The notes beneath the pieces are model-generated. The model made no database searches. It was not told the origin of the DNA and saw only the letters and a list, made by a program, of their open reading frames with translations. From sequence record OU509535.1: 64,000 nt of DNA; one strand, written 5' to 3'. Position numbers and translations under genes: made by a program. The first letter of the stretch is position 1; every line of letters begins with the position of its first letter. Positions 48,312 through 53,752 of the stretch are shown one piece after another.

Positions 48312-48728
48312 AAAAAAAAGAGATGGATGTATTCAGTACTGAATCAATTGATCGTTGCGTAATCAGATTCAGTTAGCGTAGTATTAGCTGTCACATATAC
48401 TTGTGAGCCGCAACCACTAAGTATTTAAAACCCAACGCGTGGGATGTAAGCATTCTGTACTGAATAGCAGAAGGGCTACAAAAACTTATACTTCAAAAAG
48501 GTTCGGTAAGTATTCGTAATAAACCGTTTAATCGTCTTATCAGTACTATGAACAACCAATATATTTGTGGTGGATATTATTGGACTCAAGTAGATGATGT
48601 TATCTTTGTACGCTTTCTAACCAAAAGGTCAGATAATAAAAATGTAAGAAAATTTCAGTACTGATAGCTGGAACCTTACTATAGTAAAAGACCTGATATG
48701 ACTCGCTTAGGTCTTTAAATTATATAAT

Positions 48729-48804
48729 GCGAGGGACGCTACGCCTTAGTTTAGGGCTAAAATCGTAAGGATTGCGTACTAAACCGCCTTGAGAGTCCCA
48801 AGGC
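48729..48804 (+). ncRNA. candidate pseudoknotted small RNA
   Basis: gggac/gtccc, tacgc/gcgta, gcctt/aaggc, gtttag/ctaaac; GC-rich with no ORF. Confidence 0.45.
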
Positions 48805-48920
48805 AACTTTTAATTTAAATAAATTTGTACAAAACACAAAAAGGTGATATAATGATTCTATCTGAAGAAGATTGGGGTGTTTATCCCAAAGACGAATTTG
48901 ATGGATTTTAATAAAAAATC

Positions 48921-48950
48921 TTGAACAAAAACAAAATAATGTGATATAAT
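48921..48950 (+). promoter_or_regulatory. sigma70-type promoter
   Basis: TTGAAC-18-TATAAT, TGn. Confidence 0.7.
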
Positions 48951-49103
48951 ATTAGTACTGAATGAGGATAGGTGCAGTTGGTGAGATACCGCATGAGAAA
49001 TCATAGACACCGTAGAAAGCGAAGGGCTTGGTGAGCGACGGCAATAGACAAGCATAGTAGAGGCTTGAAGAACTCATTTAGTACATTTTAATTTAAGAAT
49101 TAA

Positions 49104-49191
49104 GGCCGTATGTCCAAATTGGTAAAGGAGACAGACTTAAAATCTGTTGGTGATATTCACCTTCTCGATTCGAGTTCGAGTGCGGCTACCA
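49104..49191 (+). tRNA. tRNA-Leu(UAA)
   Basis: cloverleaf, long variable arm, acaga-CT-TAA-AA-tctgt, encoded CCA. Confidence 0.95.
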
Positions 49192-49220
49192 AATTTATAG
49201 TACTTCATTAGGTAAACAAT

Positions 49221-49544
49221 ATGTGTACTGAAGCAAGAAGATATGTTTATATTTTGGTTCGCAAAGATTTAGAACTAAAGGATATTATTGTTCAAACTGC
49301 TCATGCTTCATATGAAAGTGCAAAAGAATTCAAAAATAATGCTGATAGAACATCTATTATAGTTTTAGAAGTCAAGGACTTATACAAACTAAATGATGCT
49401 AAAAGTTATTTAAATTCTAATGGTATTAATTGGACTGTGTATACTGAAAAATCTTTAGGATTTGGAGAAACTGCTATCAGTACTGAAGCACTCAATAACG
49501 AACAACGAAAAATTATGCGTAAGTTCCAATTATTGAAAATATAA
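49221..49544 (+). CDS. second PTH2-fold protein
   Basis: YILVRKDL..VQTAHA, IIVLEV, TAIST, FQLL. Confidence 0.7.
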   Translation: MCTEARRYVYILVRKDLELKDIIVQTAHASYESAKEFKNNADRTSIIVLEVKDLYKLNDAKSYLNSNGINWTVYTEKSLGFGETAISTEALNNEQRKIMRKFQLLKI

Positions 49545-49557
49545 ATATAATAACAAA

Positions 49558-49633
49558 GCGGTTATCGTATAAAGGCTATTACCTCGGTTTTCCAAACCGA
49601 TGATGAGGGTTCGACGTCCCTCTAACCGCTCCA
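49558..49633 (+). tRNA. tRNA-Gly(UCC)
   Basis: cloverleaf, tcggt-TT-TCC-AA-accga, CCA; 8-nt T-loop. Confidence 0.9.
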
Positions 49634-49638
49634 AATTC

Positions 49639-49734
49639 AACAGGTAGTAACGCTCTTAGGTGTACATTAATATAGGAATAAGGGTTAACAGTACTGTACA
49701 CAAACGAGTAACCCCGAAAGACCCGAAACCTGTT
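49639..49734 (+). ncRNA. candidate pseudoknotted RNA
   Basis: aacaggt/acctgtt, gtgtaca/tgtacac, gggtta/taaccc. Confidence 0.5.
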
Positions 49735-49744
49735 AAAGTTTTAC

Positions 49745-49794
49745 GGATGATTATAAATCTGAATTGACAGAAACAGCTAAAACTGTTATTATCC
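49745..49794 (+). ncRNA. 50-nt tRNA-like repeat, copy 1
   Basis: 7-bp closing stem plus two hairpins; covaries with copies 2 and 3. Confidence 0.7.
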
Positions 49795-49802
49795 TATTTT
49801 AT

Positions 49803-49990
49803 TCCACAATCAGACGTATATGGTGTAAGTTACGTCGATGAAATCCAGAACAAGATCTCTGGTACTCTAGGAAGTGGTGAATGTTAACCTAGACGGGTTT
49901 GTTAATTGGACGATAAGCAATTAATACTTGACTAGCAGGTTTAAACTAGAGGTGACTGTCCTTCACTATACTGGAAAACCGGATGGATTT
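49803..49990 (+). ncRNA. candidate multi-hairpin RNA
   Basis: gacgta/tacgtc, ctagg/cctag, ttaattg/caattaa, aaatcca/tggattt; no ORF. Confidence 0.4.
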
Positions 49991-50005
49991 TTAATTAAAA
50001 AAGTG

Positions 50006-50034
50006 TTGAACAAAATGTTCAATAATGATATAAT
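50006..50034 (+). promoter_or_regulatory. promoter with TTGAAC-N5-GTTCAA inverted repeat
   Basis: TTGAAC-17-TATAAT. Confidence 0.8.
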
Positions 50035-50125
50035 AATTATCAATGTAAGGCGTGGAACAATGTTTACAGAAGTTACTTAGTAGCCTGTACGCCCCACGTC
50101 AAGGTAGCCGAAAGGCAAGTTTAAT

Positions 50126-50175
50126 GGGTGGTTATAAATCTGAATTGACAGAGACTATTAAAACAGTCACCATCC
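50126..50175 (+). ncRNA. 50-nt tRNA-like repeat, copy 2
   Basis: gggtggt/accatcc closing stem; same layout as copy 1. Confidence 0.7.
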
Positions 50176-52130: not shown

Positions 52131-52148
52131 CTTATTAAAGAAAATACA

Positions 52149-52574
52149 ATGGAATGGCGTAAATTATATCTAAAGGAATTAGATATCTATATAAATGTAT
52201 CAGATGAAGGTAATCTTCAAACATTCGATAGATATGTAACACAAACATCAATAAAAGGCAATGAATATACTAGACTAGTTGAAGGAAAAGAACTTTGTCC
52301 ATACATTAATGGTAAAGCTGGATATAGTCAAATTGGTATTCATTCTGGTGGTATACAGAAAAAATACTATGTTCATCGTCTTGTGTGGATAGCTTTCAAT
52401 GGTGAAATACCAGAAGGTTATGAAATTGATCATGATGATAATGATAAAAGTAATAATGCATTGAGCAATTTAAATCTTAAAACAAGAAAAGAAAATATGG
52501 ATAAAATGCTCATACATAGACCGTATATAAAAGAAAATTTCATTAAGAACTTTGCTCAAAAGAAAAACAAATAA
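52149..52574 (+). CDS. freestanding HNH homing endonuclease (NUMOD4-like + HNH)
   Basis: VSDEGN, VHRLVWIAFNGEIPEGYEIDHDDNDKSNNALSNL. Confidence 0.92.
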   Translation: MEWRKLYLKELDIYINVSDEGNLQTFDRYVTQTSIKGNEYTRLVEGKELCPYINGKAGYSQIGIHSGGIQKKYYVHRLVWIAFNGEIPEGYEIDHDDNDKSNNALSNLNLKTRKENMDKMLIHRPYIKENFIKNFAQKKNK

Positions 52575-52575
52575 T

Positions 52576-52648
52576 GACTCTGTAGCACAATCGGTGGTGC
52601 GATTGACTGTTAATCAATTGGTTGGGGATTCGAGTTCCTCCAGAGTCG
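52576..52648 (+). tRNA. tRNA-Asn(GUU)
   Basis: cloverleaf, attga-CT-GTT-AA-tcaat; no encoded CCA. Confidence 0.9.
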
Positions 52649-52667
52649 CTTAACAAACCAAAGAATT

Positions 52668-52814
52668 GTACCTAAATAACGAGTATATGGATTCTCTATG
52701 ATTGTCCCTGTATGAGTTAGAGAGATTATTCATAAGAAGTCGAGTGTATAGATTCTCAAAGAAATGATTGTTTATACATGAGTTATCTTAAAACGAATAT
52801 CTCAAGGTACACCA
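52668..52814 (+). ncRNA. candidate ~147-nt ACCA-ended stable RNA
   Basis: gtacct/aggtac closing stem followed by ACCA; no ORF. Confidence 0.4.
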
Positions 52815-52821
52815 AACAATT

Positions 52822-52870
52822 GACTCTGTAGTTCAGTTGGTAGATCTTATATAGTTACCAACCAGAGTCG
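52822..52870 (+). pseudogene. internally deleted tRNA-Asn-like element (mini-tRNA)
   Basis: acceptor gactctg/cagagtc+G identical to tRNA-Asn; no anticodon arm; gttggta/taccaac hairpin. Confidence 0.7.
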
Positions 52871-52878
52871 CTTACAAT

Positions 52879-52943
52879 GGAAGGTGGTAATACATCAGTA
52901 TTACCTTTTAAGACCGAAGATATGAGTATCTTCCCTTCCACCA
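52879..52943 (+). ncRNA. 65-nt three-way-junction RNA ending in ACCA
   Basis: ggaagg/ccttcc+ACCA, ggtaatac/gtattacc, gaagata/tatcttc. Confidence 0.6.
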
Positions 52944-53034
52944 CACATTGTACTCTTCTCCCGTAAGGAGAATGACAAAAAAACTATCCGAAAGATAGAA
53001 AGCCTGAAATAACAGGGTGCAATTAAATTACAAT

Positions 53035-53099
53035 GGGACATGTAGACGATAACACCAATATACTTCCAAAGGGTTGTGAGGTGCGTAATATTCCCACCA
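53035..53099 (+). pseudogene. degenerate tRNA-like element ending in ACCA
   Basis: ggga/tccc+ACCA; internal arms poorly paired. Confidence 0.35.
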
Positions 53100-53101
53100 A
53101 T

Positions 53102-53231
53102 TTTGGACAAATCGTACTGAATTAGTACTGTAATAATAGACACTTATTGCTGTAAACTGGAATGCGGTATACATTCCTTCAGATACAGAGTGTGACAATA
53201 CGATGTTAAAGGTATCCTTTGACTGTCCAAA
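53102..53231 (+). ncRNA. candidate 130-nt multibranch RNA
   Basis: tttggaca/tgtccaaa closing; nested acact/agtgt, ctgta/tacag, ggaatg/cattcc. Confidence 0.5.
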
Positions 53232-53255
53232 TTAATTTAAATGGAGTACTGAATA

Positions 53256-53456
53256 ATGTCCAAATATGTTAATCGTCAAAAACGAAAAGCACGTACTAAG
53301 GACGAAATTCTACAGTTGATACAAAAAAATCAAAAAGATGTAGTTATTGAAGAATATATTTTTCAGTACGGTAATCAACAATCAATGGTACAAGAAAGTA
53401 ATGGTAAGTATCATTCTGAGCATTACGATCTCATTAAACGAATTCTTTTGAAATAA
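53256..53456 (+). CDS. hypothetical protein
   Basis: GGAG RBS. Confidence 0.65.
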   Translation: MSKYVNRQKRKARTKDEILQLIQKNQKDVVIEEYIFQYGNQQSMVQESNGKYHSEHYDLIKRILLK

Positions 53457-53611
53457 ACAATAATACTCATCATCTAATATCAGTACTGATGCGTATCAGC
53501 AGGTGGCTTGATGGGCAGTACTGACAGGATACATCGTTCTCCGGTGGCGGGTTCGGTGGATATACGTAAAGTCGTATTGGGTATACCAAATATAATAATA
53601 AAAATATGTAA

Positions 53612-53687
53612 TAATGTGATAGCTCAAATAGGTAGAGCGGGAGGCCAAAGTGCTGACTGGTTTGTGAGTTCGATTCTCACCCATTAT
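53612..53687 (+). pseudogene. tRNA pseudogene
   Basis: intact D arm (gctc/gagc) and T arm (gtgag-TTCGATT-ctcac); decayed acceptor and anticodon arms. Confidence 0.7.
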
Positions 53688-53752
53688 TAATAAAATTGTA
53701 AGCTACCCTGTTATTTGGGTAGCTTTTTCTTTTTATATAACAAGAGATTATT

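Follow-up and report, generated by a model that had tools for sequence, protein, structure and literature searches.

Phage transfer RNA (tRNA) clusters are usually annotated as tRNA genes and intergenic filler, and the roles of the known companions of such genes, T4 RNAC and RNAD and the GOLLD and ROOL RNAs, have been unsolved for decades. What lies between the tRNA genes is the question raised by positions 48312–53700 (5389 nucleotides, nt) of a 64-kb stretch of sequence record OU509535.1, hereafter the window. A sequence-only reading of this DNA had described the interval as an RNA island in which about 12 structured elements free of open reading frames (ORFs) outnumber seven tRNAs. The interval is 100% identical to the unannotated record OU509535.1 (a 347.5-kb Klebsiella pneumoniae phage) and, in aligned parts, ∼97% identical to the Klebsiella jumbo phages RaK2 and K64-1 (Alcyoneusvirus); it constitutes the tRNA array of a Klebsiella jumbo phage resembling RaK2 and K64-1. 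On balance, we favor the view that this array includes five or more families of non-coding RNA modules that are conserved and folded and that would be freed as stable RNAs acting in trans. Conservation across phage genera is seen for five such modules on the tRNA strand, designated E, F, R (in three copies), M2, and C. The best supported of them, element E, is well supported as a new RNA family by its covariation and distribution.

Structure and conservation of element E

Element E (49801–49988; this and all other features described below are on the + strand) is a 186-nt structured RNA of nine helices, composed of a 4-base-pair (bp) closing stem, seven hairpins, and an H-type pseudoknot that joins a loop to downstream sequence. 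The pseudoknot consists of a stem, ACUUG/CAGGU, a CUAG loop that pairs with a downstream CUAG, and an A-rich linker; an invariant, Shine-Dalgarno-like AGAGGU follows it, and this core is invariant or covarying in all homologs. The covariance model recovers every homolog with scores of 84–232 bits. In the model-fitted alignment of 15 distinct sequences from which pairs were counted, 95.2% of the cells of the 49 pairs are paired, and 29 of the 49 pairs have changed on both sides, compared with 9.6 ± 2.2 in shuffles (0 of 500). Pairing falls to 37% or less when the partners are slid, and the pseudoknot is 100% paired with one compensatory change. Loops and junctions are conserved to the same degree as stems, and single-sequence folds return the same three 5′ hairpins in most lineages despite the divergence of their sequences. 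Because both MAFFT and model-based alignments misplace the 5′ hairpins of Klebsiella phage KP13-16, metagenomic locus L020, and Aeromonas phage 65, the counts for hairpins H1–H3 are conservative. Frequent G·U pairs are compatible with the + strand only, and the homologs differ by indels of 1, 2, and 5–6 nt, not multiples of three, which rules out a coding reading.

A search of Rfam 15 returned no family match to E in the window (E value ≤5) or in four divergent E loci (E value ≤1). Three more specific readings were examined and set aside: a pairing of the H3 loop (UGGUGAA) with the 3′ strand of H6 shows no covariation by eye, a CsrA-type GGA sponge is at odds with the loss of the GGA motifs in KP13-16 and Aeromonas phage 65 (also by eye), and no support was found for an anticodon-loop decoy.

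BLAST of a phage collection places E in 55 records, with a match spanning 80% or more of the element in 45 of them. Identity is 95–96% in most Asteriusvirus phages (121Q, PBECO4, and relatives), 93% in the T4-like Morganella phage Mm5, 84–90% in the T4-like Proteus and Shigella phages Pm5461, PM2, and SdyM006, and 85% in T5-like Proteus phages, including Proteus phage 1. Divergent copies occur in KP13-16 (Stephanstirmvirinae), Aeromonas phage 65, and metagenomic loci L017, L020, and L029. Pattern scans contributed the metagenomic copies L016–L020 and the IMG/VR contig L029; in IMG/VR, the E core pattern matched only 121Q, Pm5461, Aeromonas phage 65, and this new contig. E is thus found in at least seven lineages (Alcyoneusvirus, Asteriusvirus, T4-like, T5-like, KP13-16-like, Aeromonas phage 65, and one metagenomic), and it is single-copy in RaK2. 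At its position, 40 of the 55 records are blank or unannotated and the remaining 15 hold a hypothetical protein only. A host origin or host mimicry was considered and rejected, as a scan of one genome for each bacterial species gave no match to the E core pattern and E-F-R has no BLAST match in 5,426 Escherichia coli genomes.

The genomic context of E is equally consistent. In every locus with flanks examined, E lies in or beside tRNA genes, all of which are on its strand, and its ends are sharp in seven lineages. It begins 1–3 nt past the CCA of the upstream tRNA in T4-like, T5-like, and KP13-16-like phages, and the next tRNA gene follows 2–12 nt past E in Mm5, Pm5461, SdyM006, and Proteus phage 1, so that tRNA maturation alone would free E there. 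In the jumbo phages, E begins about 7 nt past a −10 box. A fragment resembling the T-arm/acceptor half of a tRNA and ending in CCA, which ARAGORN does not call, follows E in KP13-16 (L011:1620–1680).

Modules R, F, M2, and C

Module R is a Y-shaped element of ∼51 nt with a 7-bp closing stem and two short hairpins. The island holds three copies: R1 (49745–49795; fold z-score −3.3), R2 (50126–50176), and R3 (51715–51765; z-score −3.3); the RaK2 genome record, from which copy numbers were taken, has no other full match. A single copy is present in Asteriusvirus and metagenomic relatives. Among nine distinct copies compared, 97% of the cells are paired and six pairs have changed on both sides. In Asteriusvirus, 7–9 T follow the stem, as in a branched terminator; in the window, the stem is followed by AAATTTTAATTT, the U tract is interrupted, and the scan makes no terminator call. 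R1 also contains TTGACA-17-TGTTATTAT (49764–49792), which is predicted to start transcription at E. Matches to the R motif in IMG/VR lack the R fold, look unrelated, and are probably coding sequence. A 21-codon ORF with the same hydrophobic C-terminus can be read in R2 (50121–50190) and R3 (51710–51779). We consider R unlikely to be such an ORF because most copies have ACG for ATG and show no third-position bias, and the frame is probably an accident of the conserved RNA sequence.

Module F (50041–50125; 85 nt, z-score −2.4) has a 7-bp outer stem, inner hairpins, and a GCC-GAAA-GGC hairpin. It always precedes an R module and is 90% identical to its Asteriusvirus counterpart, with 2 of 22 consensus pairs changed on both sides. 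IMG/VR matches to a 16-mer of F are about as many as expected by chance. The possibility that F-R is the leader of a conserved gene was rejected, the downstream ORFs being non-homologous between genera. Module M2 (52947–53023; ∼77 nt, z-score −3.1) is closed by a 7-bp stem (ATTGTAC/GTGCAAT) around three hairpins and is 87% identical to 121Q, with 2 of 24 consensus pairs changed on both sides. It directly precedes a tRNA gene in Muenster, 121Q, and the Erwinia jumbo phage Hallingskeid, directly follows tRNA-Met in 121Q, and was found in IMG/VR in 121Q and RaK2 only. Module C (48957–49103; 147 nt, z-score −2.2) forms the leader of tRNA-Leu and is closed by a stem of 10 bp; the 3′ half of the module (49009–49073) is 86% identical to Salmonella phage 7t3/SE_PL, where it also lies upstream of tRNA-Leu, and its alignment fold contains four both-side changes. 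In K64-1, Muenster, and a wastewater strain, an insertion of ∼600 nt with a 157-amino-acid ORF separates duplicated copies of C (48956–49078; L003:2380–2853; L004:3881–4354).

The sequence-only reading had proposed covariation and Rfam searches as checks. Covariation is present for E and R and weaker for F, M2, and C; Rfam returns the tRNAs and a group I intron (RF00028) in the island and nothing for E, F, R, or M2 (E value ≤5). Its description of the region as rich in helices is borne out by fold statistics against dinucleotide shuffles. Eleven of 21 non-coding island pieces reach z-scores ≤−2.2 and five reach ≤−3, compared with 3% and none, respectively, of 63 same-length random segments from elsewhere in the window. 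Conservation provides a second contrast: between Asteriusvirus and Alcyoneusvirus, E is 96% and F 90% identical, whereas the neighboring protein genes are 62–73% identical or undetectable. By sequence comparison, E, F, and M2 are far better conserved between genera than the neighboring proteins.

Genes and lineage-specific pieces of the island

Six tRNA genes are called by both ARAGORN and Rfam (RF00005, 51.9–70.4 bits): tRNA-Leu(UAA) (49104–49191), tRNA-Gly(UCC) (49558–49633), tRNA-Arg(UCU) (51245–51318), tRNA-Ser(GCU) (51470–51558), tRNA-Ser(UGA) (51619–51706), and tRNA-Asn(GUU) (52576–52649). A seventh, tRNA(CAU) at 51830–52130, is split by a group I intron, and the earlier count of seven tRNAs therefore stands. 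CCA is encoded in only three of the seven (Leu, Gly, and Ser(UGA)); tRNA-Arg has none in register and tRNA-Asn has none. This fits a CCA-adding enzyme of the phage's own. The paper on RaK2 reports five tRNAs and two pseudo-tRNAs in two adjacent clusters, along with a Pth2-type peptidyl-tRNA hydrolase and a CCA-adding enzyme, and nothing further for the tRNA region (PMC3622015).

Two pieces read as pseudo-tRNAs, and two or three decayed tRNA genes are suggested in all. Piece L (52822–52870; z-score −2.4) is a truncated tRNA with tRNA-Asn-like acceptor ends and a D arm; sequence comparison with the adjacent tRNA-Asn indicates that the anticodon and T arms are gone. N2 (53610–53688) has recognizable D and T arms and a broken anticodon arm, as judged by reading its sequence. 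M1 (52879–52943; z-score −3.4) is a tRNA-like three-way element at the place where 121Q has tRNA-Met; an acceptor-like stem of 6 bp (GGAAGG/CCTTCC) leads into ACCA and carries a 7-bp hairpin stacked on its 3′ strand. Neither ARAGORN nor Rfam makes a tRNA call for L, M1, N2, or R.

Six ORFs lie among these RNAs. That at 49221–49544 encodes a Pth2-like peptidyl-tRNA hydrolase of 107 amino acids (PF01981, E value 5e-6, above the curated cut-off); the Pth2 type is archaeal/eukaryotic, the gene sits between tRNA-Leu and tRNA-Gly in one unit, and Muenster has an HNH endonuclease gene in its place. The others specify proteins of 47 amino acids (50199–50342, from the ORF list), 169 amino acids (50364–50873, a PHROG match to phrog_21500), 69 amino acids (51008–51217, a weak match to phrog_17965 and variable among relatives), 141 amino acids (52149–52574, a free-standing HNH homing endonuclease; PF13392 [HNH_3], E value 4e-19, and PHROG HNH families), and 66 amino acids (53256–53456, kept in Asteriusvirus E9.1 at 73% nucleotide identity over its full length).

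The remaining pieces are less conserved. A1 (48312–48477; z-score −0.55), the 3′ untranslated piece after an ORF at 48102–48311, is bounded by two TCAGTACTGA palindromes and is 67–70% identical to 121Q, E9.1, and G17; its terminal hairpins are kept in Asteriusvirus, and 4 of 13 RNAalifold pairs show both-side changes, making it a weak candidate for a structured RNA. A2 contains a 38-codon ORF and gives no fold signal. D1 (49634–49742; z-score −0.05) is a lineage-specific spacer with a 7–8-bp closing stem, 100% kept within Alcyoneusvirus and absent from Asteriusvirus, and is unproven as an RNA element. In one wastewater run, deep short contigs (word depth about 380) match ∼30 nt of D1 (49701–49732) between unrelated flanks and probably derive from another organism. 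K (52650–52821; z-score −3.8) consists of two tandem ∼45-nt hairpins within a 7-bp closing stem and is present only in the window phage, RaK2, and K64-1. M3 (53036–53235; z-score −1.6), a structured spacer that is likewise lineage-specific and unproven as an RNA element, ends in GTCCAAATTAATTTAAA and is 72% identical to E. coli phage EJP2 over 53098–53219. N1 (53457–53606; z-score −2.5), a structured spacer with two CAGTACTGA motifs, occurs in Alcyoneusvirus only. The 99–100% identity of D1, H (a hairpin described below), K, L, and N1 within Alcyoneusvirus says little at that distance.

The palindrome TCAGTACTGA, often extended to ATTCAGTACTGAAT, is strongly over-represented across the window: CAGTACTGA has 38 exact matches where 0.3 would be expected, and 48 sites are found when up to one mismatch is allowed. 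ORFs contain about two thirds of the sites, and the island contains 10; examples are at 490, 4657, 7938, 23983, 30585, 40104, 48333, 48655, 49477, 53480, and 57445. In Asteriusvirus and metagenomic relatives, the palindrome takes up the promoter spacer immediately before TATAAT. It probably acts as a signal at the level of DNA.

In sum, the ORFs cover 1815 of the 5389 nt (34% of the island), the tRNA exons 562 nt, and the intron 228 nt, leaving ∼2.8 kb. The sequence-only reading missed the six ORFs and the intron. The feature that it pointed out is real and unusual, and its elements were over-counted as ORF-free: conserved folded RNAs do occupy part of the ∼2.8 kb, but some of the roughly 12 elements are the intron, decayed tRNAs, promoter cassettes, or terminator-like hairpins. 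Non-tRNA structured elements outnumber tRNAs on a generous count, and they are on the tRNA strand. Its expectation that annotation would leave most of the region intergenic describes some public records, RaK2 among them, in which the elements are blank and most of the interval is unannotated; other records overlay tiny hypothetical ORFs, 23 of them across the interval in K64-1.

A group I intron in tRNA(CAU)

The intron that splits tRNA(CAU) spans 51866–52093 (228 nt, without an internal ORF) in the anticodon loop, between exons at 51830–51865 and 52094–52130, and matches RF00028 with 89.9 bits against a gathering score of 50. Its ends were placed by alignment to the intron-less tRNA-Met(CAT) genes of RaK2, K64-1, E9.1, and 121Q, of which those of RaK2 and K64-1 occupy the same place; removal of the intron restores the host tRNA gene precisely. 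Reading of the sequence identifies a 4-bp P1 (UCAU/GUGA) in which the last U of the 5′ exon pairs with G at the splice site, a possible P10 between the first intron bases (GGUU) and AAUC of the 3′ exon, and a G as the last intron base. These features are those of a group I intron of the self-splicing type.

The intron core is 78–83% identical to Vibrio phage sequences, one of them annotated as a terminase large subunit. Its other relatives are sequences in Staphylococcus Kayvirus genes and, in psbA of a Synechococcus phage, a sequence annotated as a group I intron. Muenster, KP13-7, RCIP0023, phiKp_21, and two E. coli phages, TH47 and Turkey5, have the same split tRNA without annotation; in all, at least seven public phage records contain this gene unannotated. 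Group I introns in bacterial tRNA genes are known from cyanobacterial tRNA-Leu and tRNA-fMet, Azoarcus tRNA-Ile, and Agrobacterium tRNA-Arg. The intron described here resembles them in lacking an ORF, in its position in the anticodon loop, and in a P1 built from anticodon-loop nucleotides, but its host gene is a phage tRNA(CAU) and its core is closest to sequences in or next to protein genes of other phages. The free-standing HNH gene lies directly 3′ of the split tRNA, an arrangement that recalls the collaborative homing of ORF-less introns in T-even-like phages. The island thus contains an unannotated group I intron within a phage tRNA gene.

Predicted transcription units and processing

We infer the transcription, processing, stability, and any function of the modules from the sequence. 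Seven island sites combine an exact TATAAT with either a TG extension or a 6/6 −35 box (−10 boxes at 48848, 48945, 50029, 50975, 51397, 51602, and 51809). Across the whole window, the + strand has 20 such sites and the − strand has one, which makes the island ∼6-fold enriched. An eighth promoter, the TTGACA-17-TATTAT within R1 (49764–49792), stops 8 nt short of E. At least six strong promoters had been claimed, and the strict definition yields seven plus this eighth. All 7–8 are strong sigma-70-type promoters on the + strand, and four of them are copies of one 45-nt cassette. P1 (48826–48853) reads TGTACA-16-TGATATAAT, P2 (48921–48950) TTGAAC/TGAACA ... TGATATAAT, P3 (50006–50034) has the cassette AAAAAGTGTTGAACAAAA..TGATATAAT, and P7 (51786–51814) is a 12/12 TTGACA-17-TATAAT; P4 (50952–50980), P5 (51374–51402), and P6 (51579–51607) come from the promoter scan. 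A G+C-rich stem with a direct U tract is found by the terminator scan at 48786–48804, a terminator-like hairpin followed by AACTTTTAATTT that closes the upstream unit, and at 53700–53725, a canonical intrinsic terminator at the island end. Hairpin H (51332–51354; z-score −2.7), 7–8 bp followed by AATTTTAATTT, forms a terminator-like end of the P4 unit.

From these signals, eight or nine short sigma-70-type units on one strand are predicted. Read-through from upstream would cover A1–A3 and end at the hairpin at 48786–48804; P1 would transcribe a 60-nt spacer; and P2 would drive C, tRNA-Leu, Pth2, tRNA-Gly, D1, and R1, with the promoter inside R1 giving rise to E. The P3 unit would contain F, R2, two ORFs, and a segment G; that of P4 an ORF, tRNA-Arg, and H; that of P5 tRNA-Ser(GCU); and that of P6 tRNA-Ser(UGA) and R3. 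P7 would transcribe the split tRNA(CAU), the HNH gene, tRNA-Asn, K, L, M1, M2, M3, an ORF, N1, and N2, up to the terminator at 53700–53725. Nearly all units close with a stem and then an A/T-rich trailer like AAATTTTAATTTAAA. The closing stems and trailers noted earlier are confirmed, with stems of 6–10 bp and AAATTTTAATTTAAA as the trailer consensus. Because the trailers coincide with the expected position of the UP element of the next promoter, they may also be read as UP elements.

E. coli RNase E cuts AU-rich single strands 3′ of tRNAs. In the model that we propose, the strong promoters, probably active early in infection, would yield polycistronic precursors in which the modules are co-transcribed with tRNAs, and host enzymes of tRNA maturation would then free them. 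The AU-rich trailers would be the sites of RNase E-type cleavage, and RNase P would act at the 5′ boundary of the following tRNA or on the tRNA-like stems of M1, L, and perhaps R; 3′ trimming by exonucleases would come last, leaving stable small RNAs that act in trans during infection. R would probably serve also as a branched 3′-end or terminator structure. An RNase P substrate was taken to need a coaxial acceptor/T-like stem of about 12 bp and a 3′ NCCA. By inspection, M1 has a 6-bp stem, a stacked 7-bp hairpin, and ACCA, making it the best candidate for RNase P recognition; L (7 + 7 bp) and R (7 + 4–5 bp) have the stems without CCA, and E, with a 4-bp closing stem and no CCA, falls outside this minihelix definition. 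Processing of the modules by the tRNA route is plausible on these features. E, for its part, would behave like a mobile RNA gene cassette that moves among the tRNA arrays of otherwise unrelated Enterobacterales and Aeromonas phages, for which the homing-endonuclease hot spots in tRNA arrays (segB in T4, the HNH genes here) would be a plausible vehicle.

Alternative explanations

Several observations weigh against stable RNAs acting in trans. The public 'RNA-Seq' runs that contain the phage are wastewater libraries with flat or patchy, DNA-like contig coverage; they show no RNA ends or enrichment over the elements and behave like DNA. The effective number of E sequences is 1.64, most being close relatives, so that covariation is carried by about five divergent lineages; the alignment was fitted to the model and leans towards structure; and the minimum-energy fold of E is no more stable than shuffles (z-score about −0.9 to −1.0). 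Asteriusvirus G17 has cleanly lost E, F, and R through a deletion of ∼323 nt that keeps the promoter and the first 35 nt of E and then continues with the ORF after R (L014:2469–2548 compared with L006:2969–3359), and phAPEC6, Sharanji, and two other Asteriusvirus isolates match just these first 35 nt; the cassette is thus dispensable on the isolation host. The ORFs directly after R2 lack promoters, which means that R cannot terminate transcription efficiently at this site. Finally, K, L, M1, D1, N1, and M3 occur in no more than a few nearly identical genomes and may be debris.

Could the modules merely punctuate the tRNA operons in cis, as terminators or attenuators, sites for RNase E, P, or III, 3′-end protectors, or UP elements? 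Every unit closes with a stem and a AAATTTTAATTT-like, UP-like sequence just upstream of the next −35 box, R occurs only at unit ends and resembles an intrinsic terminator in Asteriusvirus with its run of 7–9 T, and H and 48786–48804 are simple terminator-like hairpins. Yet in T4-like and T5-like phages E is the only element between two tRNAs, where there is no promoter, ORF, or terminator for it to regulate, and its conserved loops, junctions, and pseudoknot exceed the needs of a processing site; F-R precedes non-homologous ORFs in two genera, and the ORFs right after R2 must be read through it. We regard a purely cis role as possible but doubtful. Decay offers a different account, in which the non-tRNA pieces are worn-out tRNAs, scars of introns and endonucleases, and duplicated promoter cassettes in a recombination hot spot. 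L and N2 are recognizable tRNA wrecks, M1 lies at the place of a tRNA, four promoters copy one 45-nt cassette, and the region is a mosaic: not all relatives have the intron, their HNH genes are not the same, K, L, and M1 occur in three genomes, an ORF insertion comes with a duplication of C, and E-F-R is lost in some isolates. Debris would not be expected to be much better conserved across genera than flanking protein genes, as E, F, and M2 are, to keep its pairs by compensatory changes (in E and R, more weakly in F, M2, and C), or to show sharp ends in seven lineages, as E does. As an explanation of the island's non-tRNA pieces this is improbable, and for the conserved modules it is already unlikely.

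Translation of the segments into unannotated small proteins would agree with the hypothetical coding sequences that K64-1 (23 tiny ORFs) and several Asteriusvirus records place over E, F, and R, with the ATG that begins R2 and R3 21 codons before their ends, and with the 38-codon ORF in A2, which has no fold signal. Against it, indels of 1, 2, and 5–6 nt separate the homologs of E, F, and M2, R1 and all Asteriusvirus and metagenomic copies of R have ACG, variable columns show no third-position excess, and paired columns covary; we consider small proteins extremely unlikely. For E itself, the compact H-type pseudoknot and AGAGGU, invariant or covarying in all homologs, bring to mind a riboswitch-like element or a ribozyme, but no Rfam model matches even at E values of ≤1–5, and E is followed by a tRNA, a promoter, or F, with no conserved downstream ORF or start codon, so that such an assignment is very unlikely. 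Stable RNAs released from the array and acting in trans remain the account that we prefer.

Relation to known RNAs and significance

The closest parallel is the T4 tRNA cluster, which also contains non-coding RNAs on the tRNA strand, RNAC and RNAD (species 1 and 2 RNAs), adjoined by a homing endonuclease gene and small ORFs, and the function of which is still unknown (PMC3014915, PMC9697503). Homology was rejected: BLAST of the island against the T4 tRNA region gives tRNA matches only and none to rnaC or rnaD, the E covariance model has no match in that region (E value ≤1), and, as read from its sequence, rnaC ends in a tRNA-like T arm and acceptor stem, neither of which E has. The precedent invoked by the sequence-only reading therefore applies to the genomic niche, not to an RNA family as far as sequence can tell, and the distinct modules are more numerous here than in T4. 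GOLLD and ROOL are structured RNAs of phages and prophages, often beside tRNA islands, whose function is unknown (bioRxiv 10.1101/2024.12.08.627333). They measure about 600–800 nt, whereas E has 186 nt and the other island modules 50–150 nt; they also reside in prophages, whereas E was not found in prophages or in the bacterial genomes searched; and their Rfam models have no match in the island (E value ≤5) or in four divergent E loci (E value ≤1). R, H, and the 48786 hairpin resemble intrinsic terminators in that stems are followed by U-rich sequence; R differs from these in its branched three-way form, its conserved loops, and, in RaK2, its restriction to the tRNA island.

Of the RNA families in the island, at least E is new and well supported, and several others have weaker support. 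The island also corrects public annotations in which the region is blank or filled with spurious mini-ORFs. As a compact new family with a covariation-supported structure and sharp ends, E makes the question of tRNA-array RNAs testable: it occurs in easily grown phages (121Q, PBECO4, RaK2, and T4-like Proteus phages), and natural deletion variants exist in G17 and probably in phAPEC6 and Sharanji. The spread of E at 84–96% identity among phages of Enterobacterales hosts points to a host-linked accessory function, as does its clean loss along with F and R in G17. We tentatively suggest that E, and perhaps F, R, and M2, may be new trans-acting phage RNAs carried as cassettes between tRNA arrays and having a target in the host; they might, for instance, serve as decoys or sponges that occupy an RNA-binding protein, a nuclease, or a defense system that senses RNA. 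If true, this would explain both the recurrent horizontal spread of these modules and their conservation at the level of tRNAs, and phage tRNA arrays would be general launch pads for accessory RNAs besides tRNAs.

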